64,000 bases of DNA from Marsupella aquatica (GCA_973895155.1 OZ316897.1:12237832-12301831); one strand, 5' to 3'; numbered from the stretch's first letter, positions 1 to 51,581 are shown. Translations and numbers: made by a program. Notes: a model not told the origin generated them from the letters alone.

Positions 1-2312
1 TCCTTTTTGGCGTTAACCTCAATCCTTACGTTCATGTAATCCACTGTGAACATCATGAAATACTTACCAGCAACAAAGTCATTGTCTGGGACATCTCCAT
101 TATTGAATTCTGGGCTCTGAGCAAGCTGAACCTGAAATCTATGCCACAACGACATTGGTGCTAGAGTCATCTCCTTTTGTTGGTGCTGAATAGAGAAACC
201 CATCACCCACTGCTCCTCTCCATCATCATGTTTGCTTCTAGACTGCCACCCGTCCTCAGGATCCAAATTCCCATCAATAAGAGACGGTATAAACACTTTG
301 TCGTCCTTGCCTTTGTAGCACAATCCCAGCCATAGCAAGATAGCAATCAAATTTTCACAATCTTTGCAACCCCACCTAGCTTCAAAGAACACCTTGAAAG
401 CTCCCATTGAAATAGAACCTGTAGTGGCATCCAGTTTTCTTCTAAAGATATGGTCGCCCTCTGCACGCTCGACCATATCTTCAGACAGGAACATATTTCC
501 TATAATTTCCTCGCAGAACCAGTTCGGATTGAGGATAATAAGCTTTGGAGAAGGGATACCCCATTGAGGAGGAAAGCTCTTGTCAACGTTTATCAGGACT
601 CCAGCTTGGTCCAAATATTTAGTTGCTGATAAAATTATTTCGTGAGGGCAGTTCTCACGTAATTGCTCAACCTTCTCCACAAATTCGTCCCAACCTAGCA
701 CAGGGAACTCCTTCCTTGCCTCACTCCAAATAGGAAGGCTGTGTTGAATGACATCACAGATCATGGGAACAATCCGCTCTTTGAGCAATGTTCTGGAATG
801 TTGTAAGAGACATGTTTTAAAACCATTGACTTCCCCTCTTCTCCTAACATCCACTATAAAGGCATCAGTACGAACATCCAAAAGGCCAGTAAACTTTTTT
901 CTCTTTTCCTTTAGCAGCACCTCCCAATCTTGGCTGTTTCTCTGTACCTGTTTATGTCCTCCCATGTTGTTCAGGACAACAAAGACATGTCGGGTTTGTC
1001 TGGTGGCCTCGTGGTAGCTCGATGCAATGTACCGTAACCAGTAATCAAGCTGTTTCTCGACCTCATTTGGTGGACAGCTGGAATTGCAAACAATGACAAA
1101 TATGGTAGCTGCTCCTTGAGAGATGGTGGAGTTCCCAAATGAGAAACTTAGAGCGGGGAAGAAAGCATTGTGCACCAAATGATAATCTTCCTGTCCCGCC
1201 ATGTCCCAAACCTGCAGTGTTATTGGGTTTTGATTTTTCCACTTGCTACCTTTGCTGCCGATTTTGGAGACATCAATGCCTCTTGTGCGGGCCTCCACGT
1301 GAGGCCTCCTTTCCCATGTCCGTAGTGATCGCCAAAGTGTCCTCTTCAATGTATGACAAAGTGTTGTCTTCCCCATTTTTGGATCCCCACAAAGATAAAT
1401 CTTTCCAAAGGCAGCTGGGACCATGGAAGAGCCTGAGAGCCCCGCTAAAATATCCTTGTATCTGGTATTGCGCTTCCTTAGTTGCTGATATTGGCGTCCC
1501 AAGTCTGGAAACTTCAACGAATCAAGGTTTACTTGGACAGTGAGAGACTTGTTTAGGGCGAACGCAGACAACAAAGCAGCGGCGCCTTCTTCAGAAGGGT
1601 TTGGCACATTAAGGTCCTTTAGTGAATCAAGGCGACCAGATTTAAGGGCCTCGACTAACGACAGCATGCCCACATCTGTGAAACGATTCCGGTCAACATT
1701 CAAAAGATCTAAATTTGGCATTGCGGTGACGTCGCCATATTGGAAGGCGGTTGCAAGTGTAGCCACGTCATCATCACTGATGCCAGTCTCCCAGAGACTG
1801 AGAGTGGTCAACTTCTCCAAATTACCGGATTGAATTGCACGTCCAAGAGCTTCGACGGCTTTGGTTCCTACCGCGTTCCCACCAAAGTCAAGTATCCTAA
1901 AAGATGGAAATTTTGCTGAAGCCAGAGCATTGCTGACTGCCTCACTACGATCGTCCTCTAACCCGGTTTGTTCAAGCGACAAAGCTTCCAATGCAGACAT
2001 TTGACCAGATGCCATAGCCTCGGCAAGGATGAAGTGTCCTCTCCCAATATCCTGAAGGTCTAGGTCGATGACTGTCACTTGCGACAGATTGCCGCGCTTC
2101 ATGGCGTCGCGTAGTTCCACAATACTTCTAATTTGGATCCGACTGCTGCTGCCAGTGCTAGCCGACTCAGGCGCGACATCTTGACGCTCAGCCTGCTGCC
2201 CCGAACCAAATTTATCATCGGAGTGACGAAAGTGTTCCCCTCCTGTTCCCTGCGAGTCTTCTTGCCTAGACTCTCCACCCGTCACTCCATTCGCGCCCTC
2301 TCTTCGATCCAT
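1..2312 (-). CDS. TRN1-like: TORNADO1-like LRR-Roc-COR (Roco) protein, copy 1; 3' end lies beyond the left window edge
   Basis: Manual translation from ATG at 2312 gives MDRREGANGVTGGES..., RI-type LRRs, P-loop IYLCGDPKMGKTT and G3 WDMAGQEDY, colinear with 21256..24936. No stop was found, and the ORF track lists no terminated ORF in this frame, so it is open to the edge. Confidence 0.9.
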   Translation of the reverse strand, partial: MDRREGANGVTGGESRQEDSQGTGGEHFRHSDDKFGSGQQAERQDVAPESASTGSSSRIQIRSIVELRDAMKRGNLSQVTVIDLDLQDIGRGHFILAEAMASGQMSALEALSLEQTGLEDDRSEAVSNALASAKFPSFRILDFGGNAVGTKAVEALGRAIQSGNLEKLTTLSLWETGISDDDVATLATAFQYGDVTAMPNLDLLNVDRNRFTDVGMLSLVEALKSGRLDSLKDLNVPNPSEEGAAALLSAFALNKSLTVQVNLDSLKFPDLGRQYQQLRKRNTRYKDILAGLSGSSMVPAAFGKIYLCGDPKMGKTTLCHTLKRTLWRSLRTWERRPHVEARTRGIDVSKIGSKGSKWKNQNPITLQVWDMAGQEDYHLVHNAFFPALSFSFGNSTISQGAATIFVIVCNSSCPPNEVEKQLDYWLRYIASSYHEATRQTRHVFVVLNNMGGHKQVQRNSQDWEVLLKEKRKKFTGLLDVRTDAFIVDVRRRGEVNGFKTCLLQHSRTLLKERIVPMICDVIQHSLPIWSEARKEFPVLGWDEFVEKVEQLRENCPHEIILSATKYLDQAGVLINVDKSFPPQWGIPSPKLIILNPNWFCEEIIGNMFLSEDMVERAEGDHIFRRKLDATTGSISMGAFKVFFEARWGCKDCENLIAILLWLGLCYKGKDDKVFIPSLIDGNLDPEDGWQSRSKHDDGEEQWVMGFSIQHQQKEMTLAPMSLWHRFQVQLAQSPEFNNGDVPDNDFVAGKYFMMFTVDYMNVRIEVNAKK

Positions 2313-4030
2313 TGGATTAGCTCGATATCGTACCCTCCGACAGGTTCCCTCCTCTACATCGCACAAGCAGCTCTGTCGCCAATTGGTCCCAGGAAACCCA
2401 AGCGGATCAGTTTGATCCAGCCAGTCAATTGCCGCACTCAAATCACCGATGGTCCTTGGTACCTGGTGATCGCACCTCCCACCAGGCCTTTTTTATCCTC
2501 CAGAATGGTGAAATAGCTAGAGCAAATTGATTCAGTTCGATGCCTCTCGAATCCCCGACTGTTGCCAATGCTGATTGGACCGGAGCAGGCCTTTTCTCCC
2601 ACCAAGGTGTTGAGGAGAGTACAGAACCACCAGTAGCGCCTGAAGCCAGCTCGATTGGAACATGCAAGTCAATGTAATCGTCATTGATGTCGTGTTTCCA
2701 ACGCTTTTGATTTCTGGCAAACGCTGGACTCTTCATTTGCATGAGACAGACCTTCGACACTGCATTCGTGAAGACGTTTGGATCTGACTCAAAAAGAGGA
2801 CAAAAGTTTGGGCTAGCAGCATTGATCGTGTAGACAAGGATTGTTTCAAGATGTTGTGAATGATCTATTGAAAATTGACCTACTACGCAAGCAGTTATTA
2901 ACATATTTAATCCTACGACAGAGGGAGACTTGTCTGATTACCGAGACGTTACTGACGCATGCTTTGCCGATTCGAGTAAGCTGAAATGGAACGATCCTGA
3001 TCCCGGCATTGTTTCTGCCGCACAGGATGATCAACCAAAGAGTACAATTAATCAGCGGTGAAAATGGGAAATTGAAAGCTAAAATTCTCCAGGGGAATGT
3101 TGAGAGCTTTGTGGAGGCGCAGTTGGTGATGGGGGAAACATTAATCAAACCGAACTATCAAAGTTTAGTCATGATCGTTCTACCTAGGACACAGGATGTA
3201 AATAGAATCTATAGATCGAGAGGATGACGACCCAATCCACAGGCCGGGTCCTTCTTAATAATTCAGATTCGCAAGACAGATTAAACATTCAACATAGACA
3301 AGATGACTTACCTGAACGAGCAACATACTCGAGGAAATTTTCATCCGGGTTTTCATCCAGTCAGGTTGAAAAACCAAAGCTTGCCTGAACACTGGCAGCA
3401 GCATTCAACTCGGAATGAGTTCACGCCTACAACCAAGCACATGGTGGCCGTATAGGAAGTCACTGCACAAGGAGTGGATGTGTCATGGAACCTTTCGTAG
3501 TCTTTGCGAATTGATTTTGGCCATGGATGTGTGCCATGGATGTTGTACTTAACACATTTCCTTGCTGATATGACTGTATATACAACCTAAGGGACAACTG
3601 ACCCGCAAGCTTTAGAGACTTTGCTTCTGTTTATTGAAGAGATCAATGTGAAATACCCGTTGCTTGATTCTGATAACTTCTCAGGCTGCCTTTTAGATAC
3701 AGTCATTTTACACCACTGGACTAGCGAAGCCACAGTCCCGTCTCTGGAAGCCCGTGATGCGTTTGTTGCAGAACAATACCCGATTTGGGGTTCAGTGACA
3801 AAGGCGATCAAAAGAGTGAAGCGGCAGTAAGTTGCCCGATTTGCAACCAACAGAACTAACTATTCCTCGACTTCAAAACTTCAGAGAACTTCAGGGGACT
3901 CCTTCCATTCTGTGAACATTATAGTAAGAGACTTCTCTACTTCTGATGAGAATAGCTCGTCACAACAGTGATAGAGGAGGGTATGTCTACACTTCTAGGA
4001 GTAGATTCGATGTGAACGCCAAAATAATAT
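2313..4030. repeat. 5' flank of Roco copy 1, duplicated as the 5' flank of copy 3 (about 44404..46130)
   Basis: Near-identical sequence. Matching spurious ORFs: 2443..2904 vs 44534..45001, 2846..3148 vs 44937..45239, 3621..3830 vs 45706..45915. Confidence 0.9.
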
Positions 4031-5985: not shown

Positions 5986-6406
5986 TGTTGAGCATAGACG
6001 ACGATCGCAACGGCAAGCCCATGAACCATCCAACGCACAATAGTCGACACAAGAGATACGTGGTTCACCTCCTTGAGGCTACGTCCACGGGAACACACAA
6101 GAGAGCTTTACTGAACTCTAAGCCCGTCGGCTATACCGAGTCTCCACAGTGTAAGCTCTCCCTATCTCTCAAGTGGCTCCATAACAATGAGCCTTGGTTC
6201 TACCTCTCCAAGCACACATGCCTCTTATGATATAGTGTGCAACTTAGTTGTACCTAACCACATAGTTGTACCTAATCACGTAGTTGTACCTAACCACATA
6301 GTTGTACCTAATCACGTAGTTGTACCTAACCACATAGTTGTACCAACCCACGTTGTTGTACCAACCACGTCATACCTAACCTAGACGTAAGAGTAAATAC
6401 CCAACA
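5986..6406 (-). repeat. 3' LTR of Copia-A (421 bp) with about 7 copies of an 18-bp tandem repeat
   Basis: Matches 12062..12518 except for 2 substitutions seen by eye and 36 bp (two repeat units). Confidence 0.95.
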
Positions 6407-6596
6407 ATCTTCCCCTTGACTCTGGTCTAGGGGAGAGTAATACTGCCAATGTATATGATCCCTCAGCGGGAAGTTCTGGATAAAAACCAAACTGGTTTCC
6501 CTCTCTAACTAGAGCAAACCAGAACTAAGCCGTAGCCTAATACATAGGAATGAGGAAGAGCATATATCAGTAATTACAATGAATGTTAAGAAAACT

Positions 6597-9500
6597 CTAC
6601 TTGTGATGCAATTGCAAAACCTGCAATACATCACGGTGTCTAGAGAAACTCTCCAAATGAATCACTTTGGTAAATGCGTCAGCCGGGTTGAGTTTACCAT
6701 CAATCTTGACTAGCTCAAACAAATTATCAGACACAGCCTGCCTGATAAAATGGTACCTGACGTCAATGTGCTTCACTCTGCTGTCCATCACCTGGTTCAC
6801 AGCAAGGTGGAGCGCACTTTGACTATCACAATGGAACTTCACATTCCCCTGTGGCAATCCCATTTCAGTGATAAGTCTATCCAACCAAATCGCTTCCTTT
6901 GCTGCTTCCGCAGCTGCAACATACTCCGCTTCTGTAGTAGACTGAGCAATACACTTCTGCAAAGTAGACCTCCAACTTATGCATCCACCGCCAAGTGTGA
7001 ACACGTATCCTGTTGTTGATCTCCTTCGGTCCAAATCTTGTCCATAGTCAGAATCAACATAGCCAATCAATGATTTAGCATTCTTTGCATTCGCATCAAA
7101 TAAAAGACCATGATCCACGGTACCCTTCAAGTACCTGATAATCCACTTCACTGCTTCCCAGTGTACCTTCCCTGGATTTGACATGTACCTGCTTACCTTG
7201 CCCATAGCCATGGCAAGATCAGGTCTAGTGCAAGTCATCAAATACATGAGACTCCCCACTGCCTTGTCATACGGAACCTTTGACATCAACCCCTTCTCTG
7301 TGTCATCCGTAGGACAGAACGCTGATGATAACTTGAAGTGTGGAGCCAACGGGGTACTTACTGGCTTGCTATTCCCCATGTTGAACCTTGCAATTACCTT
7401 CCTCGCATAACTGCTCTGCGTCAACCATAGCTTGCCAGCCTCCAAGTCCCTAGTGATCTCCATACCCAAAATCCTCTTAGCTGGCCCTAAGTCCTTCATC
7501 TTAAACTCTGCACTAAGCAGTGCCTTGAGCTTAACAATCTCAGACCTATCCTTGGCTGCAATTAGCATATCATCCACATAAAGTACTAAAACAATGAACC
7601 CAAATACAATATTCTTTACCGATTTCAAATACACACAAGGGTCAAATACACTTCTGTGAAAACCTTGTGACCAAATCCAATCGTCAAACCGCTTGTTCCA
7701 CTGTCTTGGTGACTGCTTCAACCCATACAAGGATTTCAGCAATCTGCAAACCAATTCCTCCTGTCCTCTCTTCACAAAACCTAGCGGTTGTCTCATGAAG
7801 ATCACCTCTTCCAATGTGCCATAGAGGAAAGCTGTGACAACATCCATCTGATCTAGCAGCAGACCAAACATTACAACAAGTACACACAATAGTCGTATTG
7901 TAGAGTACTTAGCAACTGGTGAGAAGACCTCATTGTAATCCACACCTTTCTCTTGTGTGAATCCCTTTGCTACCAACCTAGCCTTGTAGACCTTCGATCC
8001 ACCTCCTATGGAATTATCCTTCAGCTTGTAAATCCACTTGTTGTCCACCACTTGCTGACCCTTAGGCAGCTTAACAAGCTCCCAAGTTTTGTTGTCCTTT
8101 AGTGACTGCATCTCCGTTTGCATTGCTGCAGTCCACTTTTGCTTCTCCTTTGAAGCACTTGCCTCATGAAATGAAGAAGGTTCCCCTTCTTCCAAAATTA
8201 ACGCATCACCCTCATCATCAGCTGCAAAATCATTTTCTTGCAGTTGAGATGAATCAACCCACTGTCCATACCTTGGTGGAGCACGTACAGTGCGACCAGA
8301 TGTTCTTCTAGCCGATGACTTCGGTTGATCTGCGTGTGCTGGTACAATTTGAAGCTCAACAGCATCCACTTGCTGCTCACCAGCATCAACAAACTCCTCT
8401 GGTTCCTCTGGCACAGGAACCAGCTCCATAATTGGAGCAACTCCTTCTCTCCGGTCATGCACCTCATAACCAATCTCCCCCTCAACGAGATCCGGGATAG
8501 GAGATTTTCCTTTGTCAGTACGGGAGACCTGAGTATTCTCCCCCTCCTTCAATAATCTGGATTCATTGAAGGAAACATCCCTACTGACAACGAGCTTACA
8601 GGCAATAGGATCCCATAGCCTATAGGCTTTCACACCACTCTGGTACCCAAGAAAAACACATTTCTTGGAGGTAGGATCCAACTTGGTCCTATTCTGCTTC
8701 GGTGTGAGAGCATATGCATCACTTCCAAAAACTACCAAGCCATGATAGTGTGCTTGCCGCTTATAGCGCATCTCAAACGGCGTTTTGAAATTGATAGCAC
8801 TAGAAGGAGAAAGATTTACCAAATAAGCTGCGGTATTGACAGCTTCTGCCCAAAATTCTTGTGGTAAATCTGATTGGCTCAACATACTCCGTGACCGCTC
8901 CAACAGTGTCCGATTGAGCCTCTCAGCGACACCATTCTGCTGCGGAGTATAAACTGTGGTGAGATGGCGAGTTATCCCCTGTTCTGAACAGTACTCTTCA
9001 AATTCCATTGAAGTGTACTCCCCGCCGTTGTCTGACCTCAGACTCTTCACCCTTGTATCCAAACACTTGATCGTGTTTCCAGTCTGATTCTCCACCTGGG
9101 CCTTCCACTTCTTAAAAATGGACAAGACATCAGACTTATGCGTCATGAAATAAATCCACACAAATCTTGAGTAATCATCAATAAATGATACATAGTACAA
9201 CTTTCCAGAGTGTGAGGGAGTCGGGGATGGACCCCACACGTCACTATGTATGTACTCAAGAACCACTTTGGAACGATGAGTTCCAACACCAAAAGCACGA
9301 CGATGCTGCTTTCCAAGAATGCAATGCTCACAAAACTCTAATTTACAAGATTGCAAATCAGAAATGAGTCCATTCTTCCGTAAGATAGCCAAACCCTTCT
9401 CACTCATGTGGCCTAGCCGTGAATGCCACAGTTGAGTCATCTCCTTGTGAGACTTGGTTACATTGGCCTCTCCACATACAGTATTGCCCTGTAACACATA

Positions 9501-9866
9501 CAAATTCTTTTGTCTACTCCCCTTCAAAATCACTGTCTCTCCCGACCTGACTTGAAGTTCACCATCAATAACGCTCCATTGATGACCATTTGAATCCAAC
9601 ACACCGAGTGAAATCAGATTCTTACGCATGCCAGGTACATACCTGACTCCGGACACTGTGCGCACAGCGCCATCAAACATTTGAATCTTCACAGACCCAA
9701 TTCCCTCAATTTGACAGGAGTGATCATTTCCCATCAGAACTGAACCGTTTGAAATAGAGTAAGAACTGAAAAACTCACGAATGTAACAAATATGAAAAGA
9801 GCAAGCACAATCAAGAATCCACACATCATCTGCTCTCCTAGACGTGCATAGGGCATACCCCCGGCT
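6597..9866 (-). CDS. pol: Copia-A Pol (protease, GAG-pre-integrase, integrase, RT, RNase H), in frame with gag behind a single TGA
   Basis: WILDCACSFH (protease; DCA rather than DSG/DSA), HSRLGH..CEHC, DVWGP..SDNGGEY..VAERLNRT, YKARLVAKG, LYVDDML, KHIDVRYHF, ADAFTK. Confidence 0.93.
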   Translation of the reverse strand, partial: SRGYALCTSRRADDVWILDCACSFHICYIREFFSSYSISNGSVLMGNDHSCQIEGIGSVKIQMFDGAVRTVSGVRYVPGMRKNLISLGVLDSNGHQWSVIDGELQVRSGETVILKGSRQKNLYVLQGNTVCGEANVTKSHKEMTQLWHSRLGHMSEKGLAILRKNGLISDLQSCKLEFCEHCILGKQHRRAFGVGTHRSKVVLEYIHSDVWGPSPTPSHSGKLYYVSFIDDYSRFVWIYFMTHKSDVLSIFKKWKAQVENQTGNTIKCLDTRVKSLRSDNGGEYTSMEFEEYCSEQGITRHLTTVYTPQQNGVAERLNRTLLERSRSMLSQSDLPQEFWAEAVNTAAYLVNLSPSSAINFKTPFEMRYKRQAHYHGLVVFGSDAYALTPKQNRTKLDPTSKKCVFLGYQSGVKAYRLWDPIACKLVVSRDVSFNESRLLKEGENTQVSRTDKGKSPIPDLVEGEIGYEVHDRREGVAPIMELVPVPEEPEEFVDAGEQQVDAVELQIVPAHADQPKSSARRTSGRTVRAPPRYGQWVDSSQLQENDFAADDEGDALILEEGEPSSFHEASASKEKQKWTAAMQTEMQSLKDNKTWELVKLPKGQQVVDNKWIYKLKDNSIGGGSKVYKARLVAKGFTQEKGVDYNEVFSPVAKYSTIRLLCVLVVMFGLLLDQMDVVTAFLYGTLEEVIFMRQPLGFVKRGQEELVCRLLKSLYGLKQSPRQWNKRFDDWIWSQGFHRSVFDPCVYLKSVKNIVFGFIVLVLYVDDMLIAAKDRSEIVKLKALLSAEFKMKDLGPAKRILGMEITRDLEAGKLWLTQSSYARKVIARFNMGNSKPVSTPLAPHFKLSSAFCPTDDTEKGLMSKVPYDKAVGSLMYLMTCTRPDLAMAMGKVSRYMSNPGKVHWEAVKWIIRYLKGTVDHGLLFDANAKNAKSLIGYVDSDYGQDLDRRRSTTGYVFTLGGGCISWRSTLQKCIAQSTTEAEYVAAAEAAKEAIWLDRLITEMGLPQGNVKFHCDSQSALHLAVNQVMDSRVKHIDVRYHFIRQAVSDNLFELVKIDGKLNPADAFTKVIHLESFSRHRDVLQVLQLHHK

Positions 9867-12047: not shown

Positions 12048-12059
12048 GCTCTGATACCA
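12048..12059 (-). promoter_or_regulatory. Primer-binding site (tRNA-iMet 3' end) of Copia-A
   Basis: gctctgatacca on the plus strand equals TGGTATCAGAGC, 2 bp from the 5' LTR. Confidence 0.92.
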
Positions 12060-12061
12060 AT

Positions 12062-12518
12062 TGTTGAGCATAGACGACGATCGCAATGGCAAGCCCATGA
12101 ACCATCCAACGCACAATAGTCGACACAAGAGATACGTGGTTCACCTCCTCGAGGCTACGTCCACGGGAACACACAAGAGAGCTTTACTGAACTCTAAGCC
12201 CGTCGGCTATACCGAGTCTCCACAGTGTAAGCTCTCCCTATCTCTCAAGTGGCTCCATAACAATGAGCCTTGGTTCTACCTCTCCAAGCACACATGCCTC
12301 TTATGATATAGTGTGCAACTTAGTTGTACCTAACCACATAGTTGTACCTAATCACGTAGTTGTACCTAACCACATAGTTGTACCTAATCACGTAGTTGTA
12401 CCTAACCACATAGTTGTACCTAATCACGTAGTTGTACCTAACCACGTAGTTGTACCAACCCACGTTGTTGTACCAACCACGTCATACCTAACCTAGACGT
12501 AAGAGTAAATACCCAACA
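12062..12518 (-). repeat. 5' LTR of Copia-A (457 bp) with about 9 copies of the 18-bp repeat
   Basis: TG..CA termini, adjacent PBS, and TSD GGTAC after 12518. Confidence 0.95.
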
Positions 12519-34605: not shown

Positions 34606-37600
34606 TTACATGTCGTTAACCAGATTAGACTTCCTGAACTTCTGATGACAGTCGGTGCAGATCCAAACAACACCATGGAGAGAACCATCGTTGTATGCCA
34701 AACACACCTTTCGAAGTCCTAACTTCTCCTCGTAGGCCTCTGCTGTCAATTTTCCTACTAAATTAGTGATGGCTGCTCTACTCTTTCCATACAAATCCTG
34801 AGGGTTCAAAGGGGGACCAGTAGGATCAAGTCCCATGCCCTCAGTCATCAGCTTATTTAATTCTGGCATTGAGTACTCGGTGGCCCAGACGATTCCATCT
34901 AACACTGATTTTCCTTGCTGTACTTGCTGGAAGTCGGGCAGTAGCAAACCCGCCCCAGGGGCTACGACATTCGCTGCAATTTTTGCAGAGATTAAGAGAA
35001 CTGTGAGCGACACTTTGAGCCACGGGACAAGTGTTTTCAGGGCCGGCTTGAGGTCTGAAACAACCAGGCCCAGCTGGTCCTTGACTTGATGCGGTGTGTA
35101 ACTATTGTACCTGGCCTCACATGCAAATTGCAAACGAACATCGACACTTGGTGACAAAGCCTCCTTCAATGTAGCCCTTACACCAGAATCTCGTTTCCCC
35201 AAATAGATGAGGTTTGGGCAGGTTCTGTCCTTGTCTTCTTTCAGAAATCTGTCAGTGTCTTGAAGCTTCCGAAACATCCTTATCTGCTCCTTCAAAACCT
35301 CTGCAAATCCCTCCACAAGCATCCTTTCAACATTCTTCACCTGCTTGTAGATGTTATCCTGATTGTTCATAATCTTATCCAGCTTCTCATTCATATTGTG
35401 CAGCTTCCTGTTAACAGTTGATAATCTTTGCATCTTCTCGGCAGTTGGGCTTGTAGGTGGATTCGCCATTTCAATGCCATCCGATGCCAGTGCCGGCTCC
35501 TCCACCTTGTCCCCGTCTGTTGAGATATCCGACTCCTCAGTTAACTCGGGTGGATAGATTCCTAGGGTGACAGCTTCCCGTAATCCTTGCCTCAAAACAT
35601 TCAGGTCGTTCTTTGCTGACATAATCACATACTTTTTGTCCTTTGTGGACAGCAGCTGATCTTCTGTTATTGCAGAATCATAGCTGACACGCCACTGCAT
35701 TTTTCTTCCCATGCCATGCACTTGCACGCACTTCTTCACTTCAGCCACTTCCACATTTCTGTGCTTCATGTACCCTTCTTGTCTAGACTGGGAAACCGGC
35801 CAAGGCCAAACCACTTTCTGCACGTACCGAACCCCTCCACAAATCTCATTCCACAGGTCCAGCAGTATATTGACAAGATCATCAGCCAGGTTCACTTGGC
35901 AATTTTTCCGTTGTATAACATCCATCTCGTCTTTCCTGAATTGCGGCTTCACCAAAATGCTGATCTCATCAAATGTGGGAGAGTACTTTTCGGTGTTAAC
36001 CTCAATCCTTACGTTCATGTAATCCACTGTGAACGTCATGAAATACTTACCAGCAACAAAGTCATTGTCTAGGACATTTCCATTATTGAACTCTGGGCTC
36101 TGAGCAAGCTGAACCTGAAATCTATGCCACAAGGACATTGGTGCTAGAGTCATCTCCTTTTGCTGGTGCTGAATAGAGAAACCCATCACCCACTGCTCCT
36201 CTCCATCATCATGTTTGCTCCTAGACTGCCACCCATCTTCAGGATCCAAATTCCCATCAATAAGAGACGGTATAAACAGTCTGTCGCCCTTGCCCTTGTA
36301 GCACAATCCCAACCATAGCAAGATAGCAATCAGATCTTCACAATCTTTGAGACCCCACCTAGCTTCAAAGAACTCCTTGAATGCATCCATTGAAATAGAA
36401 CCTGTGGTTGCATCCAGTTTTCTTCTAAAGATATGGTCGCCCTTTGTAAGCTTGACCATATCTTCAGAAAGGAACATATTTCCTATAATTTCCTTGTAGA
36501 ACCAGTTCGGATTGAGGATAATAAGCTTTGGAGAAGGGATACCCCATTGAGCAGGAAAGCTCTTGTCAACGTTTATCAGGACTCCAGCTTGGTCCAGATA
36601 TTTAGTTGCTGATAAAATTGCTTCGTGAGGCCAGTTCTCACGTAATTGCTCAACCTTCTCCACAAATTCGTCCCAACCTAGCACAGGGAACTCCTTCCTG
36701 GCCTCACTCCAAATCGGAAGCCTTTGTTGAATGACATCACAGATCTCGGGAACAATCTGTTCTTTAAGCAATGTTCTGGAATGTTCTAAGAGACATGTTT
36801 TAAAACCATTGACTTTCCCTCTTCTCCGAACATCCACTATAAAAAGATCAGAACGAACATCCAAAAGGCCAGTAAACTTTTTCCTCTTTTCCTTTAGCAG
36901 CACCTCCCAATCTTGGCTGTTTCTCTGTACCTGTTTATGTCCTCCCATGTTGTTCAGGACAACAAAGACATGTCGGGTTTGTCTGGTGGCCTCGTGGTAG
37001 CTCGATGCAATGTAACGTAACCAGTAATCAAGCTGTTTGTCGACCTCATTTGGTGGACAGCTGGAATTGCAGACAATGACAAATATGGTAGCTGCTCCTT
37101 GAGAGATGGTAGAGTTCCCATCTGAGAAACTTAGAGCGGGGAAGAAAGCATTGTGCACCAAATGATAATCTTCCTGTCCCGCCATGTCCCAAACCTGCAG
37201 TGTTATTGGGTTTTGATTTTTCCTCTTGCTATCTTTGCTGCCGATTTTGGAGACATCAATGCCTCTTGTGCGGGCCTCCACGTGAGGCCTCCTTTCCCAT
37301 GTCCCTAGTGATCGCCAAAGTGTCCTCTTCAATGTATGACAAAGTGTTGTCTTCCCCACATTTGGATCTCCGCATAGATAAATCTTTCCAAAGGCAGCTG
37401 GGACCATGGAAGAGCCCGAGAGCCCCGCTAAAATATCCTTGTATCTGATATTGCGCTTCCTTAGTTGCTCATATTGGCGTTTCAATGTAAACATGAACCG
37501 CTCAAAGTGTATGTCGACAGTGAGAGACTTGTTTAGGGCGAATACAGACAATAAAGCAGTGTCGCCTTCTTCAGAAGAGTATAAATTTCGTACATAAAGG

Positions 37601-38013
37601 TTCTCCAGTGAATCAAGGCGACCAGATTCAAGGGCCGCGACTAACGACATCAGGCCCACATCTGTGAAACGATTGTCATCAAGAGACAACGCTTGTAAAT
37701 TTGGCATGACGGTGCCGTCGCCATATTGGAAGGCGGTTGCCAGCGTATCCATGTCATCGTCATTGATGTCAGTCCCACTGAGCCAGAGAGTGGTCAACTT
37801 CTCCAAATTACAGGATTGAATTGCACGTCCAAGAGCTGCGACGGCTTTGGTTCCTACCGCGTTCTCACCAAAGTCAAGTGTCCTCAAAGATGGGAATTTT
37901 GCTGAAGCCAGTGCATTGCTGATTGCCTCACTACGATCGTCCTCTAACCTGGTATGCACAAGCGACAAACTTGTTAGAAACTCGGGGGTCTCACTGTATG
38001 GATGTCTCCCCAT
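34606..38013 (-). CDS. Potential N-terminally replaced Roco protein (1135 aa) starting at a MITE-derived ATG
   Basis: ORF track 34606..38016. The ATG at 38013 lies inside the MITE, giving MGRHPYSETPEFLT fused to SLSLVHTR.... Expression is unknown. Confidence 0.4.
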   Translation of the reverse strand: MGRHPYSETPEFLTSLSLVHTRLEDDRSEAISNALASAKFPSLRTLDFGENAVGTKAVAALGRAIQSCNLEKLTTLWLSGTDINDDDMDTLATAFQYGDGTVMPNLQALSLDDNRFTDVGLMSLVAALESGRLDSLENLYVRNLYSSEEGDTALLSVFALNKSLTVDIHFERFMFTLKRQYEQLRKRNIRYKDILAGLSGSSMVPAAFGKIYLCGDPNVGKTTLCHTLKRTLWRSLGTWERRPHVEARTRGIDVSKIGSKDSKRKNQNPITLQVWDMAGQEDYHLVHNAFFPALSFSDGNSTISQGAATIFVIVCNSSCPPNEVDKQLDYWLRYIASSYHEATRQTRHVFVVLNNMGGHKQVQRNSQDWEVLLKEKRKKFTGLLDVRSDLFIVDVRRRGKVNGFKTCLLEHSRTLLKEQIVPEICDVIQQRLPIWSEARKEFPVLGWDEFVEKVEQLRENWPHEAILSATKYLDQAGVLINVDKSFPAQWGIPSPKLIILNPNWFYKEIIGNMFLSEDMVKLTKGDHIFRRKLDATTGSISMDAFKEFFEARWGLKDCEDLIAILLWLGLCYKGKGDRLFIPSLIDGNLDPEDGWQSRSKHDDGEEQWVMGFSIQHQQKEMTLAPMSLWHRFQVQLAQSPEFNNGNVLDNDFVAGKYFMTFTVDYMNVRIEVNTEKYSPTFDEISILVKPQFRKDEMDVIQRKNCQVNLADDLVNILLDLWNEICGGVRYVQKVVWPWPVSQSRQEGYMKHRNVEVAEVKKCVQVHGMGRKMQWRVSYDSAITEDQLLSTKDKKYVIMSAKNDLNVLRQGLREAVTLGIYPPELTEESDISTDGDKVEEPALASDGIEMANPPTSPTAEKMQRLSTVNRKLHNMNEKLDKIMNNQDNIYKQVKNVERMLVEGFAEVLKEQIRMFRKLQDTDRFLKEDKDRTCPNLIYLGKRDSGVRATLKEALSPSVDVRLQFACEARYNSYTPHQVKDQLGLVVSDLKPALKTLVPWLKVSLTVLLISAKIAANVVAPGAGLLLPDFQQVQQGKSVLDGIVWATEYSMPELNKLMTEGMGLDPTGPPLNPQDLYGKSRAAITNLVGKLTAEAYEEKLGLRKVCLAYNDGSLHGVVWICTDCHQKFRKSNLVNDM

Positions 38014-38277
38014 CACCTGCGACGTTTTTAGGCCTCGGACCCCCTAAAATGTAAGAATTTTTTTTATTTTTTTGACCCCTATAAAGTTGGAATATTCTTA
38101 GAATATTCTCAAATTTTGGTTATAAAGACCCTAACGTTCTTATAAGTACCAAAATTGGATTTAAAAGACCCTATTGTTCTTCTCAGAAAATTCTTAAGTC
38201 TTCCCTTCGAACCAATAAAATGACCCTATACTTCGTCGCACGTGATATGCCATTTTTGTGGAAGTGAAACCCCCGAG
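37981..38277. mobile_element. 297-bp MITE (TIR CTCGGGGG..TCACT, 8-bp TSD) inserted 9 bp inside the 5' LTR of Copia-B
   Basis: ctcgggggtctcact ... agtgaaacccccgag, with TSD GTTAGAAA (37973..37980, 38278..38285). Absent from the 3' LTR. Confidence 0.92.
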
Positions 38278-38770
38278 GTTAGAAACTGCGTTGTACTCGT
38301 GACGTGACATTAAGGGAGTAATAGACCACTCGCTGTCCTTAGTACTATGAGCTTGACAAGAGCGCATTATGCGCTCCCCACTTACGGTAGTAAATACAGT
38401 AGGTGCGCCCCATGCGCTCCCCACTCTGCTTAGTTAGCGGTGTCTCTTATTACTAGTAGGTCTAGGTTAGTAGCCCAGTCCGTCGATCTCCCTTGATCTG
38501 CGATCTCCTCTCTCTACTTATATGGCCCTCCGCTGCATCTTCAGTATTCAGTCTACTTACGATAGATTCCAACATGGTATCAGAGCCAGGGCTCTGAAAG
38601 ATTAGCTACATCTTCGTAATCTGAGATTAGAACGATAGTGCAGTCATCAGGTAGAAAGTGTCCCTGATTAGCGCACTCTTTAGACAGCTCCTCGTGTAGA
38701 AACGAGATACGTGTAACTACAGTCTGAGTGAGAATTCCTCAAACTGCACTTACACCATCGGTAATCCCAG

Positions 38771-41700
38771 ATGGACCTACTTAGATTATTCTCAGAGAGC
38801 GACAAGCTCGATGGCTCTGTGAATCACATGACTTGGACCATAGTGGTCAAGAATCTCTTGCGAAGAGATGAACTATTTGATGAGCTGAACTTTGGCGTGA
38901 AGCCAGACGCCAATGGTGACATTGTTGACGGAGGTCAGCACCTGACGGCAGCTGAAAAGCAGAAGAAGAAGGTTCGGGCAACTTCAATCTTGGCAGCTAC
39001 AGTCAAGTCCAAGTTCCTGCCCACTATTGACCGATACAATGCTGACCCTGCCAAATGCTGGGCACACTTTCAGCAACGATTCGGAGGCAATCTTCTTCAG
39101 CGACAGTTACTGTTGGAGCAGAAGCTTCAAAGCGTCACCATGAGCAATGGTGGCTCGGTTGAAACGTACATCAACATTGTTAACGAGCTTGCTGGTCACT
39201 TGTCCAGCATCAATGCCGAGACCGATGAGACTCGCCTAATACACATCGTACTTAAAGGGCTCCCAAGTTCCTGGGGTCCCTTTGTCTCTATGTTTGCAGC
39301 TGATCTGTCTCGCACTCCAAAGCCAACCTACTCCAGTCTGGTTGAACGCCTCCAGGCTGAAGAGTATTGGAAGAAGGGGAAGCAGATCGAGGTGACGGAG
39401 GAAGCAATGGCTGTTACACGTCACTTTGGTCGAGGTCGGGGACGCTTTCAGCCACGAAACGATGGCTACAATCAGCCACGAGGAAACGGCAACTTTGGCA
39501 ACTTTCATAATCCACGTCCAAATCCTGCTGGACGTGGCAAGAGGCTCGGGAACTGCAACTATTGCAGCAAGGTAGGTCACTGGGAAGCTGATTGTGACCT
39601 TAAGAAACTAGATGATCAGATTGCTGACCTACAGTTGAAAGCTGCAGGCATTCGCAGGTTCCGTCCCCAGGCCAACATTGCTGAGCTCCTCCCTGAGGCA
39701 GAGGTCGACGAAGAAGACCAGATTGAGTTTGCCACTGACGAAGGCGAACCTATCGAGATCAACTTCACTGAGATCAATGCTCAGCGTAGCTCTAGCGAAT
39801 GGATTTTAGACTCCGGTGCAAGTACTCATGTGAGCGGTGATAATGTTGTGTTCCACAATATCACCCCAGGTGCCCGCTCTGATTCTGTAACCACTGCCAA
39901 TGGCACTCAGCTTCCCGTAGCTGGCCAGGGCAGTGTCTCCGTTGATGAGAATAAAGTTGTCTCCAATGTTTTGTACGTCCCGGGTCTGAAACGTAATCTT
40001 CTATCCATCGGAAATCTAACAGATGCAGGACACCTTATTCTCTTCAATTCTAAGTCCTGTTTCATCTTTGACAAAGATAATCCACGGAAGGTCTTCCTCC
40101 ACGGCACCAGAGATCCTCGGAACAAGCTTTATAAGCTTTGTCAACGACTTCCTATTCTCACTCCTCCCTATTCACCATTACGTGTACAGCTTCGATCAAC
40201 TCCTGCACTGGTTACTGAGGTCTCAACTCCTGATCATGCTGCACCAGTCTCGACCACTGCTACATCGACTTCCGATCAAGTCGAACTCTGACATCGACGC
40301 TTAAGTCACGTCAATTACCAGATGGTACACCATATGTCTAAGGGCTCCTTAGTTACTGGTATTCCGCTGCTACCACGAGTCAAACGAGTTTGCCATACCT
40401 GCACACTTGGCAAACATCATCGAGAGAAGATTCCAAAACATTCCATGACTCGCACTTGTCGCCCTTTGGAACTTATTCACACTGATCTATGTGGACCAGT
40501 CCGAGGTCCTGCCCCTTCCAAGTATATCCTAACCTTCATCGATGATTTTTCCCGTTTCACGTGGGTTTATTTCTTATCCAGAAAAAGTGAGACATTTGAT
40601 ATCTTTAAGGAATTTTGAATTATGGTTGAGAATAAATTCTCCCACAAGCTAAGTTGTCTCCGCTCTGACCGTGGTGGAGAATACATGTCTACCGAGTTCC
40701 TTGAGTTTTGCAGAGAAAATGGCATTCGACGACAATTGACTGTGGCTAATGCCCCTCATCAAAACGGGGTGGCTGAACGGAAAAATCGCACACTTCTTGA
40801 AGGCGCTCGCAGTATTCTCATTGGTTCACACACCCCTCTCTCACTTTGGACTGAGAGCATCCGCACGGCCAACTATATTCAAAATCGTTCAGGCACGAAG
40901 GCCCTCCGTCAGACTACTCCGTTCGAAGCTCTTCATGGTACTAAGCCTGACCTTGGGCACCTTCGCGTGATTGGCTGCACGGCATACGTGCTTCTTCCAG
41001 ACTCACTATGCTCCAAATTAAGTGCTAAGTCTATCCCTACTTTATTTCTTGGTTATGATGAGGAGTCCAAGGCTTATCGATGCTACGACACCGTGCGCCA
41101 CAGAATTCTCATTTCCAAAGATGTTATTTTTGATGAGAATACGATGTGCATCCCTTCCACAGTTCGTTCCTCTGCTGCTGATTTTTTCACCAGACTTCTC
41201 TCAACTTCAGATCTCGGGGGGGTCACTTCCACGGAAGTGACACATCACGTGCGACGAAGTATAGGCCCATTTAAATGGGTGTGGCGGAAGACTTCCAAAG
41301 TTTGGTGGAAGAACACATAGGGCATGTTTTATTGATTGGTCGACTTTAAAGAACACATAGGCCTATTTAATTGCAAAAAATACTTTCTATAAAGTTTTTA
41401 GGGGTTTTTTAATAAAAAATGACAAAATTTTAAGAAAGAAAGGGTTTTGCAAAAAAATATTTTTCACTTTAAAGTTAGGGGGGTCAAACCCTAAAACGTC
41501 GCACGCGATGTATGACCCTCCATATAGTGACCCCCCCGAGCTTCAGATGAGGATCCTCTCGACCAACAACATCGACCTGGGCCTCTCGTCCCAGAGGGGG
41601 AAATTCTTCCTGGACCCGAGCAAGTCCAGCATGGCATCGTGGACCAGGCCAACATCATACCTGCTGATGCTGCTCAACCTGAGCCCGCTACGCCAAATAT

Positions 41701-43453
41701 TCAGCCCAACATTCCAGCAGTTCCTCCTCCACCTCGGCCGGCTGCCACTCGACATTCTCTAAGAGCTCATCGACCACCACCTTGGCACGATGACTACGAT
41801 ATGAGCACCAACTTAGTTGAATCTGCTAGTCCAGAATGTGAGCAGCTATCTCCAGAGGAGGCTCTCAAACATCCTGGCTGGAAAAAGGCTATGGAAGAAG
41901 AGATTGCATCTCTCCTGAATATGGGGACTTGGGAACTTGTGTACCTCCCCGCTGGCAGAAGAGCTCTTACAGCCAAATGGGTCTTTCGGGCCAAACCCGA
42001 CTCCACCCGGTTCCGTCTCAAAGCAAGGTTAGTTGCTCGTGGATTTGAGCAAAAATTTGGTGTAGACTATAATGAAACCTTTGCTCCTGTAGTTAAATGG
42101 TCAACATTGCGCACCATCATTGCCTTAGCTGTTGCCAACGGATGGCCTCTCCATCACATGGACGTTGTCACCGCCTTCCTGAATGGCACCCTTACGGAAG
42201 AAATTTATATGCACCAACCACAGGGTTTTGTCATTCCTGGCAAAGAAGGCATGGTCTGCAAACTACGACGGTCCCTTTACGGATTAAAACAATCCCCCCG
42301 GGCATGGTATGAAGAAATTGACTCTCACTTAAGATCTACCGGATGGACTCGGAGCCTTGCTGACCCAAATCTCTACTTTCGACACCAAGATGGTCAGCTA
42401 GTTATCATCATGCTCTACGTTGATGATCTACTTATCACCGGTAGCTGCTCAGATCAAATTGCTACAGTCAAGGCTCACCTTCATCAAAAGTATCATATGA
42501 AGGACTTAGGCCTGGCACAAAAGTATCTTGGAGTCGAATTTCTTCCCACCCCATCTGGAATGATTCTTCACCAGACGGCTTACTGTGAACAACTTGTTCA
42601 GGAATTTGGCATGCAGGACTCCAAACATGAGCATATTCCGCTCCCAGAAGGACACGTTCTTACTTGTGACACTAGCACGCCCTCTGTGGATGTCACTGAT
42701 TATTGTCATGCTGTTGGCAAGTTAATATTTCTCACCCATACTCGACCCGACATCGCATACGCTGTGGGGATTGTCAGCCGCTATATGTCTTGTCCACAAC
42801 AACGTCACTGGGAATCCGTCAAGCATATTCTTCGTTACCTAAAGGAGACTACCAATTTTGGCATTCAATTTCAGCGCTCTAATACGTCTCTTCTTCAAGG
42901 CTTCACGGATGCTGACTTTCTAGGCTGTCCTGATACTCGTCGCTCCCGAGGTGCCTACCTCATTCAGCTTGCCAATGGACCTATCTCCTGGTCCAGCAAA
43001 CTCCAAACCACTGTATCGGATAGCACTACTGAAGCGGAATACAAAGCGTTATCTGAGGGCACCAAGGAGGCTGTTTATGTGCGACGACTCCTTCTGGAAC
43101 TTAATGATACCTCGGCTATTAAGGTCCCTATTGGTATTTCAAATCCAACCATCCAGGGCAATCTTGCTCAGGCCTCTACTCCTACTTCTTTAGACGTTCA
43201 TTTACATTGTGACAATCAGGGCTCTATCAAGCTGGCCAAAAATCCTGTGTTCCATGCACGCACCAAGCACATCGAAGGAAAGCATCATTTCGTGCGCGAA
43301 AGAGTGCTAGAGGGGGAAGTTACTCTGTCTTACATTAACACAGCTGATAATCCCGCAGATTTACTCACGAAACCTCTTTCGAGACACAAATTCGAAAAAC
43401 ATCGACAATTTATTGGGGTCACTTCGATTTCAGAAGTAGATGTTCAATCCTAG
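38771..43453 (+). pseudogene. Copia-B gag-pol, one reading frame broken by TGA at 40289 and 40616 and by a MITE at 41213..41540
   Basis: ORFs at 38771, 40322, 40622 and 41639 are all in the same frame. Motifs CNYCSKVGHWEADC, WILDSGAS, L*HRRLSH, SDRGGEY, LYVDDLL, ADLLTK. Confidence 0.92.
41213..41540. mobile_element. 328-bp MITE, same family as 37981..38277, in opposite orientation
   Basis: ctcgggggggtcact ... agtgacccccccgag, with TSD CTTCAGAT (41205..41212, 41541..41548). Shares the internal catcacgtgcgacgaagtatagg motif. Confidence 0.92.
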
Positions 43454-43775
43454 TATTGCTGAAATCGATCAGCTCTACCTCCTGTAAAGTCTTATAACGC
43501 CTCACCACTACTCTCCTCCACCAGCTGCATCGACTCACCCGCCACTACTGACAACAAACTACCGGCTCTACCGGCTCTACTGGCTCTTGCATCAATGGAA
43601 TCCACCGTGCCATTATCCGGCAACCGATGTGCAGCACAGTAAAGGCATACCCAAGCATCTCGCAGCTTGCACTGAGACACACTATCAAGATGCCAATGAA
43701 CGACATTTTTTCTCTCTCATCTCGCCGCACTCCGCCTTCTGCACTCTGTTCCTCCCTTACTCACTCGAGAGGGGG

Positions 43776-44068
43776 TGTTAGAAACTGCGCTGTACTCGTG
43801 ACATTAAGGGAGTAATAGACCACTCGCTGTCCTTAGTACTATGAGCTTGATAGGAGCGCATTATGCGCTCCCCACTTACGGTAGTAAATACAGTAGGTGC
43901 GCCCCATGCGCTCCCCACTCTGCTTAGTTAGCGGTGTCTCTTATTACTAGTAGGTCTAGGTTAGTAGCCCAGTCCGTCGATCTCCCTTGATCTGCGATCT
44001 CCTCTCTCTACTTATATGGCCCTCCGCTGCATCTTCAGTATTCAGTCTACTTACGATAGATTCCAACA
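43776..44068 (+). repeat. 3' LTR of Copia-B (293 bp)
   Basis: Differs from the MITE-free 5' LTR by about 3 substitutions and a 5-bp duplication. Confidence 0.95.
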
Positions 44069-47000
44069 AAACTCTCCAGTGCAGAAAATTGACCAGATGC
44101 CACAGCCTCGGCAAGGCGGCGTAACTGTCCACTCCCAATATCCTGGCGGTCTAGCTTGATGACTGCCACTTGCGTCAGATTGCCGCGCTTCATGGCGTCC
44201 CGTAGTTTCTCCATACTTGTAATTTCGATCCGACTGCTGCTGCCAGTGCTAGCCGACTCAGGCGCGACATCTTGACGCCCAGCCTGCTGCCCCCAACCAG
44301 ATTTATCATCGGAGTGACGAAAGTGTTCCCCTCCTGTTCCCTGCGACTCTTCTTGCCTAGACTCTCCACCCGTCACTCCATTCGCGCCCTCTCTTCGATC
44401 CATTGGATTAACTCGATATCGTACCCTCCGACAGGTTCCCTCCTCTGAATTCCACAAGCAGCTCTGTCGTCAATTGGTCCCAGGAAATCCAAGCGGATCA
44501 GTTTGATCCAGACAGTCAATTGCCGGACTCAAATCAACGATGGTCCTTGGTACCTGGTGATCGCACCTCCCACCAGGCTTTTTTTATCCTCCAGAATGGT
44601 GAAACAGCTAGAGCAAATTGATTCAGTTCGATGCCTCTCGAATCCCCGACTCTTGCCAATGCTGATTGGAGCTGAGCAGGCCTTTTCTCCCACCAAGGTG
44701 TTGAGGAGACTACAGAACCACCAGTAGCGCCTGAAGCCAGCTCGATTGGAACATGCAAGTCAATGTAATCGTCATTGATGTCGTGTATCCAACGCTTTTG
44801 ATTTCCGGCAAACGCTGGACTCTTCATTTGCATGAGACAGACCTTCGACACTGCATTCGTGAAGACGTTTGGATCTGACTGAAAAAGAGGAGAAAAGTTT
44901 GGGCTAGCAGCATTGATCGTGTAGACAAGGATTGTTTCAAGATGTTGTGAATGATCGATTGAAAATTGACCTACTACGCGAGCAGTTATTAACATATTCA
45001 ATCCTACGACAGAGGGAGACTTGTCTGATTACCGAGACATTACTGATGCATGCTTTGCCGATTTGAGTAAGCTGAAATGGAACGATCCTGATCCCGGCAT
45101 TCTTTCTGCTGCACAGGATGATCAACCAAAGAGTACAATTAATCAGCGGTGAAAATGGGAAATTGAAAGCTAAAATTCTCCAGGGGAATGTTGAGAGCTT
45201 TGTGGAGGCGCAGTTGGTGATGGGGGAAACATTAATCAAACCGAATTATCAAAGTTTAGTCATGATCGTTCTACCTAGGACACAGGATGTAAATAGAATC
45301 TATGGTTCGAGAGATGACGACCCAATCCACAGGCCGCGTCCTTCTTAAGAATTCAGATTCGCAAGACAGATTAAACATTCAACATAGACAAGATGACTTA
45401 CCTGAACGAGAAACATACTCGAGGAAATTTTCATCCGGGTTTTCATCCAGTCACGAAAAACCAAAGCTTGCCTGAACACTGGCAGCAGCATTTAACTCGG
45501 AATGAGTTCACGCCTACAACCAAGCACATGGTGGCCGTATGGGAAGTCACTGCACAAGGAGTGGATGTGTCATGGAACCTTTCGTAGTCTTTACGAATTG
45601 ATTTTGGCCATGGATGTGCCATGGATGTTGTACTAAGCACATTTCGTTGCTGATATGCCTGTCTATACAACCTAAGGGACAACTGACCCGCAAGCTTTAG
45701 AGACTTTGCTTCTGTTTAGTGAAGAGATCAATGTGAAATACCCGTTGCTTGATTCAGATAACTTCTCTGGCTGCCTTTTAGGTAGACTCATTTTACACCA
45801 CTGGACTAGCGAAGCCACAGTCCCGTCTCTGGAAGCACGTGATGCATTTGTTGCAGAACAATATCCGATTTGGGGTTCAGTGACAAAGGCGATCAAAAGA
45901 GTCAAGCGGCAGTAAGGTGCCCGATTTGCAACCAACAGAACTAACTATTCCTCGACTTCAAAAACTTCAGAGAACTTCAGGGGACTCCTTCCATTCTGTG
46001 AACATTATAGTAAGAGACTTCTCTACTTCTGATGAGAATAGCTCGCCACAACAGTGATAGAGGAGGGTATACCTGGATGCTGTAGAAGTACACTTCTAGG
46101 AGTAGATTCGATGTGAACGCCAAAATAATATTCGATGTGTACGCCAAAATAATATTCAATTGGGATGCTTTCATGTTGTGTGACAGTCTCGAACTGCCCA
46201 GTCTAGTACAGCGAGGACGGGCCCAAACAATCAAAAGCTACTGTAAATGGTGGGCTCTCGGCACGACTTGCCAAGTTACTGGAAGGCATCGAAAGTCACG
46301 ACTCGTGACCGAATAAGGTCACGGGTAGGTACGAGGGATCACTGGGCCCTGTGGAATCTGAAGGGGATGGGAGCAGGGTTGCAGCATCACTCTACCTTGT
46401 CTTCAGAGTGGAAAAATATGGCTCCCGTGGAAGCAAATCGTCAAAAAAAATTCTCTTTTCAGTTGCGTTTGACAAACCTGGTACTCAATTGGAAGCTTCA
46501 AGGTAAGTGTCAGCTTCAAGAAGATTGGTCTTGGCCAATCGATTGTGATAGATTGTGAAGACTCTGCAAGGATTGGATTGAATGGAACGATGATATCTTG
46601 TTCTTTATTTTACATGCCTGCGACGAACCCCCCAGCGACGAACCCCAAAAACGATTTCGTTTGGAAGTCCCGCCTCCGTGGGTCCAGGACATCGAGTACA
46701 GTAGTCGAATCAAAGTTTTCTTGCACTAACTCCTGTAGGCAACAGGGACATCCTCTGAATAGCCCCTTATCTGATGGAATGAGAAACAGACTAGTTATGA
46801 TCAGGAGTATCAAAACGAGGTAAAGTGCACACGGAAGTACGTGAAGAGAATACACGTGAGGAACTCAATGCTGTGAGAATTGGAGACAGAAAATAGTAAA
46901 CATCGAGTCCATGAGTTCCAGTGAAAAAGCTTCGAATCCTCTATTGAATATTGAACTCTGAGTACCCCGAGAATCAAACCGGACATAAGTACTTCAACCA

Positions 47001-51520: not shown

Positions 51521-51581
51521 GAGAAACCTCAAAAGAAGGAAGCCGGGAGAGGTAAAATGATGAGAGTATTGATCAAATAAA

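Follow-up and report, generated by a model that had tools for sequence, protein, structure and literature searches.

Intracellular immunity in plants is attributed to nucleotide-binding leucine-rich repeat (LRR) receptors (NLRs), and the loci of NLRs and receptor-like proteins (RLPs) are typically tandem clusters, rich in transposable elements (TEs), in which the rate of replacement substitutions (dN) exceeds that of silent substitutions (dS) on the binding face. Roco genes, which encode LRR-Roc-COR GTPases, are described as present in one or two copies per land-plant genome, TORNADO1 (TRN1; also LOPPED1) of Arabidopsis and other angiosperms having a developmental role (PMC11378527, citing Cnops 2006). 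In brown algae, LRR-ROCOs with the same LRR-Roc-COR plan form expanded families and have been proposed as non-NLR immune receptors (PMC11378527). Positively selected sites have been reported on the concave face of their LRRs in Ectocarpus and Saccharina (Zambounis 2012; PMC11378527), and they diversify by shuffling 72-bp exons that each encode a single LRR, as well as by alternative splicing (PMC11378527). Here, we analyzed 64,000 nt of the liverwort Marsupella aquatica (GCA_973895155.1 OZ316897.1:12237832-12301831; hereafter the window, with positions counted from its first letter), which holds three Roco paralogues. In our judgement, there is an even chance that the window carries part of a tandem array of liverwort-specific, expanded cytoplasmic LRR-Roc-COR GTPases with a TRN1-type C-terminal module, acting as a diversifying receptor repertoire. 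The array evolves as units of ∼13 kb are duplicated, copies exchange sequence, and individual copies are destroyed by inserted retrotransposons. A short, ribonuclease-inhibitor (RI)-like LRR domain has a concave face on which replacements outpace silent substitutions, and purifying selection maintains the GTPase, COR and C-terminal parts.

All three paralogues lie on the minus strand and are intronless, as determined from the list of open reading frames (ORFs), Pfam matches and tblastn. An earlier description made from the DNA without database searches (the sequence-only reading) had claimed three paralogues in a tandem array, which was borne out by tblastn and by reading of the ORFs; the array lies in TE-rich DNA with several copia elements. 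Copy 1 (c1; 3–2312) comprises the N-terminal 770 codons of a gene that runs off the window start, that is, an N-terminal tail, the LRR (∼1503–2078), Roc and most of COR; its single-frame, stop-free translation is 85% identical to copy 2 over 769 aa (tblastn). Copy 2 (c2; 21259–24936) is an intact, uninterrupted ORF of 1226 codons with its stop codon at 21256–21258. Copy 3 (c3) is found in two pieces, an upstream one from the start codon to the second LRR strand (44069–44403; 80% identity to c2 aa 1–106, tblastn) and a downstream one from the second LRR strand to the stop codon (34609–37971; 89.5% identity to c2 aa 105–1226, tblastn). Between them, a Ty1/copia long terminal repeat (LTR) retrotransposon of 6097 bp (37972–44068, plus strand) lies in the coding sequence and splits the second LRR. 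With the insertion removed, along with one of the two 5-bp target-site repeats, c3 consists of 1231 stop-free codons. This joined reading of c3 served the alignment alone, database searches being made with uninterrupted sequences. Only c2 is thus demonstrably intact within the window. All three copies share the same repeat number in a three-way alignment. Contig pieces matching c2 were only 95–315 nt long and highly variable, as multicopy families that have been collapsed in assembly would be, and they are uninformative about transcription or alleles.

The hypervariable part of c2 is its LRR domain (24133–24711, minus strand; aa 76–268), which is built of seven RI-like repeats and an N-terminal cap strand, the ∼7 repeats being 28–33 residues long each. 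Pfam matches to LRR_4/LRR_6 were obtained in the Roco copies, with LRR_4 in c2. An AlphaFold 2 (AF2) model of c2 aa 55–300 (pLDDT 91.7) has eight short strands alternating with helices, a fold of the ribonuclease-inhibitor type for which Foldseek returned the LRRs of NLRP1, NLRP9 and NOD2, RNase inhibitor and RanGAP as best matches. Using the canonical LRR pattern, we delimited seven xxLxLxx motifs and scored which alignment columns vary among c1, c2 and c3. At the exposed x positions, 25 of 35 columns (71%) are variable, compared to 6/34 (18%) at the framework L/N positions and 31/122 (25%) in the LRR helices and loops, or 37/156 (24%) in the rest of the LRR altogether (Fisher P=1.7e-7); outside the LRR, the figure is 90/575 (16%). 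The claim of the sequence-only reading that the differences pile up at the exposed x positions was therefore confirmed. Likewise, all the strings on which that claim was built recur in the three-way alignment, namely EALSLEQ/EVLSLER/ESLSLVH, RILDFGG/RTLRFHR/RTLDFGE, TTLSLWE/THLILWQ/TTLWLSG, DLLNVDR/ERLFLDG/QALSLDD and KDLNVPN/ENLYVSN/ENLYVRN for copies 1/2/3, together with those of the cap. The strands of the AF2 model sit on x3-L4-x5 in six of the seven motifs, the seventh being shifted by two residues, and a recount by hand in the AF2 register gave 26/35 variable columns at x positions versus 36/156 in the rest of the LRR. Across 12 aligned family members, taken from the window and from Calypogeia fissa, 48 LRR columns are invariant or near-invariant. 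These include many framework and helix positions, but when mapped by hand onto the AF2 model none of them fell on the 35 x positions, where ∼7 would be expected (P ∼5e-4). The concave face is therefore hypervariable throughout the family.

Pairwise Nei–Gojobori counts among c1, c2 and c3 showed that selection differs sharply along the gene. Over the whole gene, dN/dS is 0.70–0.72. For the LRR it is 1.23, 1.32 and 3.27 in the three pairs, the last value being that of c2–c3 (Nd=63.3 on 434 sites, Sd=6.7 on 139 sites; local dS 0.05, dN 0.16; one-sided P(dN>dS)=0.0013). Outside the LRR, dN/dS is 0.45–0.53, with 0.40–0.96 for Roc, 0.37–0.48 for COR and 0.19–0.23 for the C-terminal 450 codons (c2 vs c3); the N-terminal tail is near neutral (dN/dS ∼1). 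At the 35 exposed codons, dN reaches 0.44–0.57 against a gene-wide dS of 0.08–0.10, a ratio of 4.2–7.1 (P from 1e-7 to 1e-13). The non-exposed LRR positions give 0.66–1.12 on the same scale, which is about the silent rate. The helical backs, said to be conserved in the sequence-only reading, are therefore so only in relative terms (25% vs 71% variable columns), and in absolute terms they change almost neutrally. Consistent with these counts, no part of the duplicated unit has diverged more than the DNA encoding the LRR (88–89% identity, compared to 95–100% in the noncoding flanks). An exposed-site dN/dS of at most 1, an even spread of the variation and a small, stable family had been named in the sequence-only reading as outcomes that would refute its candidate immune system, and none of them was observed.

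Downstream of the LRR, c2 carries a Roc GTPase domain (23647–24036, minus strand; aa 301–430) that matches Pfam PF08477 with E=1.4e-10; scores for this family are 41.9–42.7 bits in c2 and c3 (c2 41.9) at a cut-off of 27. A phmmer search of the PDB aligned c2 with the Roc and Roc-COR structures of LRRK2 (E ∼1e-5; Roc-COR residues 1328–1607). The P-loop (GDPKTGKT in c2) and the switch II motif DMAGQ (DxxGQ) are intact in all three copies, and the x positions of the P-loop vary among them (KM/KT/NV). The G4 guanine-specificity motif, canonically [NT]KxD or THxD, reads NNMG (NNMGGH) in all three and is non-canonical, the Asp being missing; it lies at aa ∼444–450 of c2 (window 23600–23650), and the corresponding residues are THYD in TRN1 and NCFD in Marchantia. 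C-terminal to Roc follows a COR-A-like region (22912–23352, minus strand; aa 529–675). Its Pfam COR-A score of 22.6 bits is below the 35.3 cut-off, but it aligns with the COR-A/COR-B stretch of Ipomoea TRN1, and PF16095 is precomputed on one C. fissa family member (P0006), making COR homology likely at the sequence level. The remainder is a C-terminal module (21259–22614, minus strand; aa 775–1226) with a long predicted helix, a hydrophobic helix and a WIC..C.H tail, which aligns with the C-termini of TRN1 and of Marchantia proteins in BLASTP. Its AF2 model was poor (pLDDT 60.7), and a structural search matched only its single long helix (Z ∼6), which is uninformative; Pfam returned only a sub-threshold DASH_Duo1 coiled-coil match, and the ESM Atlas gave no usable match. 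Pfam detected no NB-ARC or NACHT domain in any Roco copy, the NTPase being Roc, nor a TIR, CC, RPW8 or other known executioner domain.

Characterized Roco proteins cycle between monomer and dimer with their nucleotide state. In the liverwort proteins, the LRR may serve as a ligand-binding sensor whose specificity is being diversified, and binding would be coupled through the Roc-COR pair as a nucleotide-dependent switch to the invariant C-terminal module, a putative common output. The proteins would then form an intracellular receptor repertoire for variable, most probably biotic ligands (pathogen, symbiont or other non-self), and would be functional analogues of NLRs in which a Ras-like GTPase takes the place of the STAND ATPase. 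By analogy with NLR/RLP loci and brown-algal LRR-ROCOs, the simplest guess is that these ligands are molecules of pathogens or symbionts.

Several observations weigh against a diversifying receptor repertoire. Local dS at the exposed codons is itself raised (0.13–0.37) and higher than in the rest of the LRR, which probably reflects the spreading of multi-hit codons over silent and replacement paths by the Nei–Gojobori method. The comparisons are pairwise among three non-independent paralogues, and only that of the c2–c3 LRR is individually significant for dN>dS when local dS is used. Since the window contains c3 only in broken form and c1 only in part, some of the replacements may reflect relaxed constraint, and clustered differences could have entered the copies by exchange with paralogues that are more diverged. 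Furthermore, GTP switching is not assured because the G4 motif is non-canonical, and TRN1, the only characterized plant Roco, is developmental.

A rival account is a decaying cluster of redundant copies or pseudogenes, in which the replacement excess in the LRR reflects relaxed constraint and is not adaptive. The copia element within c3 fits such decay, as do the near-neutral non-exposed LRR positions and N-terminal tail, and the window start leaves c1 without proof of completeness. Relaxation cannot, however, lift dN above dS, and the c2–c3 LRR ratio of 3.3 (P=0.0013) and the exposed-site dN at 4–7 times the gene-wide dS both lie beyond what it can produce. The conserved framework L/N positions directly beside the variable x positions (6/34 variable), the purifying selection on Roc, COR and the C-terminal module (0.2–0.5) and the three frames without stops or frameshifts over 770–1231 codons are equally hard to reconcile with it. 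Moreover, the break in c3 is recent, because the LTRs of the inserted element are 97–99% identical and c3 reads through its 1231 codons once the element is removed; on this sequence evidence, it is much younger than the divergence of the copies. We therefore regard decay as quite improbable.

The element itself has LTRs at 38278–38574 and 43777–44068 that are 97% identical over 297 nt, or 99% over 272 nt ungapped, with TG..CA ends and a 5-bp target duplication (AAACT at 37967–37971 and 44069–44073). Pfam identified Gag, Pol_BBD, integrase/SH3 and RVT_2 ORFs on its plus strand. The insertion, which the sequence-only reading leaves unmentioned, falls within the c3 string ESLSLVH, so that 'ES' is encoded at 44069–44074 and the remaining 'LSLVH' runs down from 37966. 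This copia carries at its low end an element of 306 nt with short inverted ends (CTCGGGGG...CCCCCGAG; 37972–38277), bordered by an 11-nt direct repeat, TGTTAGAAACT, which is also the first 11 nt of the LTR. By sequence, it looks like a MITE-type (miniature inverted-repeat transposable element) insertion into the LTR edge. The listed ORF at 34606–38016 begins inside it.

The copies are also mosaics. In 60-codon windows along the gene, dS ranges from 0 to 0.39, and the relationships switch between segments. Around codons 481–600, c1 and c3 are nearly identical at silent sites and c2 is distant, and over the last 230 codons it is c2 and c3 that are nearly identical (dS 0.03). Indeed, the two differ at only two residues in the last ∼230 aa, in agreement with the near-identity of their C-termini noted in the sequence-only reading. 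This patchiness implies that the copies exchange sequence and have no single divergence time. Comparing exposed-site dN with gene-wide dS is therefore not a clean test, whereas the c2–c3 LRR comparison is cleaner because its own local dS is low (0.05). Judged from the alignment, tract exchange by conversion is real in this array, and gene conversion or unequal crossing-over with more diverged paralogues, for which many potential donors exist, might have brought in old LRR tracts such that the selection measured against gene-wide dS is overstated. The switching relationships, the near-identical C-terminal codons of c2 and c3 and the higher dS at exposed codons than in the rest of the LRR would all be explained. 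Nevertheless, a local dS of 0.05 against a dN of 0.16 means that no old tract was imported into the c2–c3 LRR. Conversion can redistribute differences but does not create them; donors that kept their framework must already have varied at these x positions, and the family-wide pattern still needs diversifying or strongly position-specific selection. As an account of the LRR signal, exchange is thus improbable.

To place the family, we searched 1.8 billion representatives exhaustively with HMMER. Close relatives (∼60% identity, range 43–68%) were found only in the leafy liverwort Calypogeia fissa, followed by full-length relatives at ∼30% identity in Marchantia and Riccia, and then by mosses. 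The architecture is shared end to end with the proteins of C. fissa, Marchantia and Riccia (Mp5g10940, Mp3g18490, Mp2g10020); for Mp5g10940, BLASTP aligned c2 over its entire length at 29% identity. The C. fissa members (P0001–P0014 and P0161) occur several to a contig with at least one pair in tandem, and of the nine homologues listed, four lie on one 8-Mb contig and two on another. A second LRR-Roc gene is located 5 kb upstream of P0001 on the same strand. This neighbour (L001 2436–6218, CBCUJL010000034.1) was called as two same-strand genes, one of 820 aa with LRR and Roc and one of 377 aa without a Pfam match, which by their arrangement may be a single Roco gene split by a frameshift or an annotation break. 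In P0002 and P0161, the usual LRR block is preceded on its N-terminal side by a duplicate, and duplication of the LRR domain therefore also occurs in the family. Roco proteins of the Marchantiales are few in copy number and very diverged, the best pair between M. polymorpha and M. paleacea being 35% identical; they had been considered as a conserved-orthologue control and were dropped for this low identity. A large, recent Roco expansion has so far been seen, in the sequences searched, only in the Calypogeia-like lineage.

The relationship to TRN1 is one of architecture. A 'Protein TORNADO 1' of Ipomoea was matched with E=3e-24 and 27% identity over Roc-COR, ranking far below the liverwort proteins, and in BLASTP, c2 aa 284–1121 aligned with aa 478–1268 of Ipomoea TRN1 at 21% identity over 911 aa. 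This alignment runs from Roc to the C-terminal hydrophobic helix and includes the PN..Y and CE.R motifs, and PF27087 is precomputed on both TRN1 and P0002. Given an identity of only 21–27%, the liverwort family is not orthologous to TRN1. The earlier label 'TORNADO1-like' therefore holds for the domain plan, that is, an RI-like LRR (LRR_6), Roc, COR-A/COR-B and a plant-specific C-terminal module, but not for orthology. The liverwort family departs from TRN1 in its multiple, tandem copies, in the smaller size of its LRR, in its non-canonical G4 and in the excess of dN over dS within the LRR. The common architecture over the whole length could nonetheless signify an endogenous, TRN1-like role in which the LRRs of the paralogues adapt to co-evolving host partners or serve self recognition (gametophyte or clone compatibility), and RI-like LRRs are indeed present in the non-immune proteins RanGAP and RNase inhibitor. 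True TRN1, however, is at least 68% identical across the angiosperm homologues listed, in sharp contrast to the liverwort Roco family. Tandem copies, dN>dS on the binding face, TEs, mosaicism and copy loss would, by analogy, fit an arms race better. We consider an endogenous role unlikely.

In comparison with brown-algal LRR-ROCOs, the liverwort genes share the LRR-Roc-COR plan, the family expansion and a selection signal on the concave LRR face but are intronless with a fixed number of ∼7 repeats, and they vary by point substitution and exchange between tandem copies. Shuffling of single-LRR exons was not encountered in the three copies, c2 being one ORF and the repeat number equal in all of them. 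The two groups also belong to unrelated lineages and differ in their C-terminal domains. With NLRs, the array has in common a tandem, TE-rich cluster with birth-and-death evolution, mosaicism and dN>dS at exposed LRR residues, as well as a plan of LRR, nucleotide switch and conserved output domain, here with putative sensor and output roles. Animal NLRP1, NLRP9 and NOD2 even provide the closest LRR folds to that of c2 (Foldseek). Different from NLRs are the use of a Ras-like Roc GTPase with a COR dimerization domain as the switch, without NB-ARC/NACHT, and the N-terminal, much shorter LRR. Taken at the level of sequence, the array displays the evolutionary mode of NLRs (tandem TE-rich cluster, exposed dN>dS, mosaics and copy loss), which is a mode and not proof of immune function.

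It is possible, and we propose it tentatively, that a TRN1-type Roco scaffold became the basis of a second repertoire of intracellular receptors in the leafy liverworts of the Calypogeia lineage, in which the LRR would sense pathogens or symbionts, Roc-COR would switch, and the C-terminal module of coiled coil and hydrophobic helix would execute the response. If true, this would represent convergence both with NLRs and with the LRR-ROCOs of brown algae, and it would hint that plant Roco proteins were ancestrally sensors. A full-text literature search found no publication dealing with expanded Roco families, or with Roco proteins in immunity, for liverworts or any other land plants, and the Marchantia pangenome paper makes no mention of Roc or GTPases. 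After brown algae, the array would be a second, independent instance in which LRR-Roco proteins evolve in the manner of immune receptors, and the first in the green lineage. What the present window adds is a quantitative dN>dS signal localized to the concave face as modelled. In addition, the Roco array provides a system for testing what Roco GTPases sense and what the C-terminal module of TRN1 does.

The duplicated unit takes in the flanks of the genes, with a c2-to-c3 register of 13,350 bp. The 3′ flank of c2 (19900–21258) matches 33262–34608 beside c3 with a mean column identity of 96% over 1368 columns and served as our noncoding yardstick. The 5′ flank of c2 (24937–28785) is 95–100% identical to its counterparts, indels and a copia insertion aside. 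It matches the flanks of both c3 and c1 over the first 344 nt, and then 46155–46795 and 52032–54829 upstream of c3. These 344 nt, which directly precede the start codon, are conserved among c1, c2 and c3; on this ground, they may contain the promoter and 5′ untranslated region. Some 1.4 kb of 5′ flank common to c1 and c3 (∼97% identity) is absent from c2 (24937–26300 vs 2313–3900 and 44404–46795). As to further genes between the Roco copies, we found in the window only small ORFs without a Pfam family, retrotransposon fragments excepted.

Two other young copia elements are present in the window. The one between c1 and c2 (5986–12361, minus strand) has 300-nt terminal direct repeats that are 99% identical and contains Gag, integrase and RVT_2 ORFs at 6597–10907. 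The other, in the duplicated 5′ flank of c3 (46796–51892, minus strand), has 300-nt terminal repeats with 100% identity and a single gag-pol ORF of 1472 aa; homology to the upstream region of c2 resumes at 52032. Together with the insertion in c3, these elements show, by the identity of their repeats, very recent copia activity in the Roco cluster. A reverse transcriptase fragment was additionally detected at 30200–30667 (Pfam).

Near the end of the window, we observed two adjacent ankyrin-repeat ORFs (61051–63996, plus strand), the second of which also carries a PGG domain (Pfam). From their arrangement, they are probably one gene for an ANK-PGG membrane protein, with an intron, that runs off the window end. 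The combination of ankyrin repeats and PGG is that of plant proteins of the ACD6/ITN1 type.

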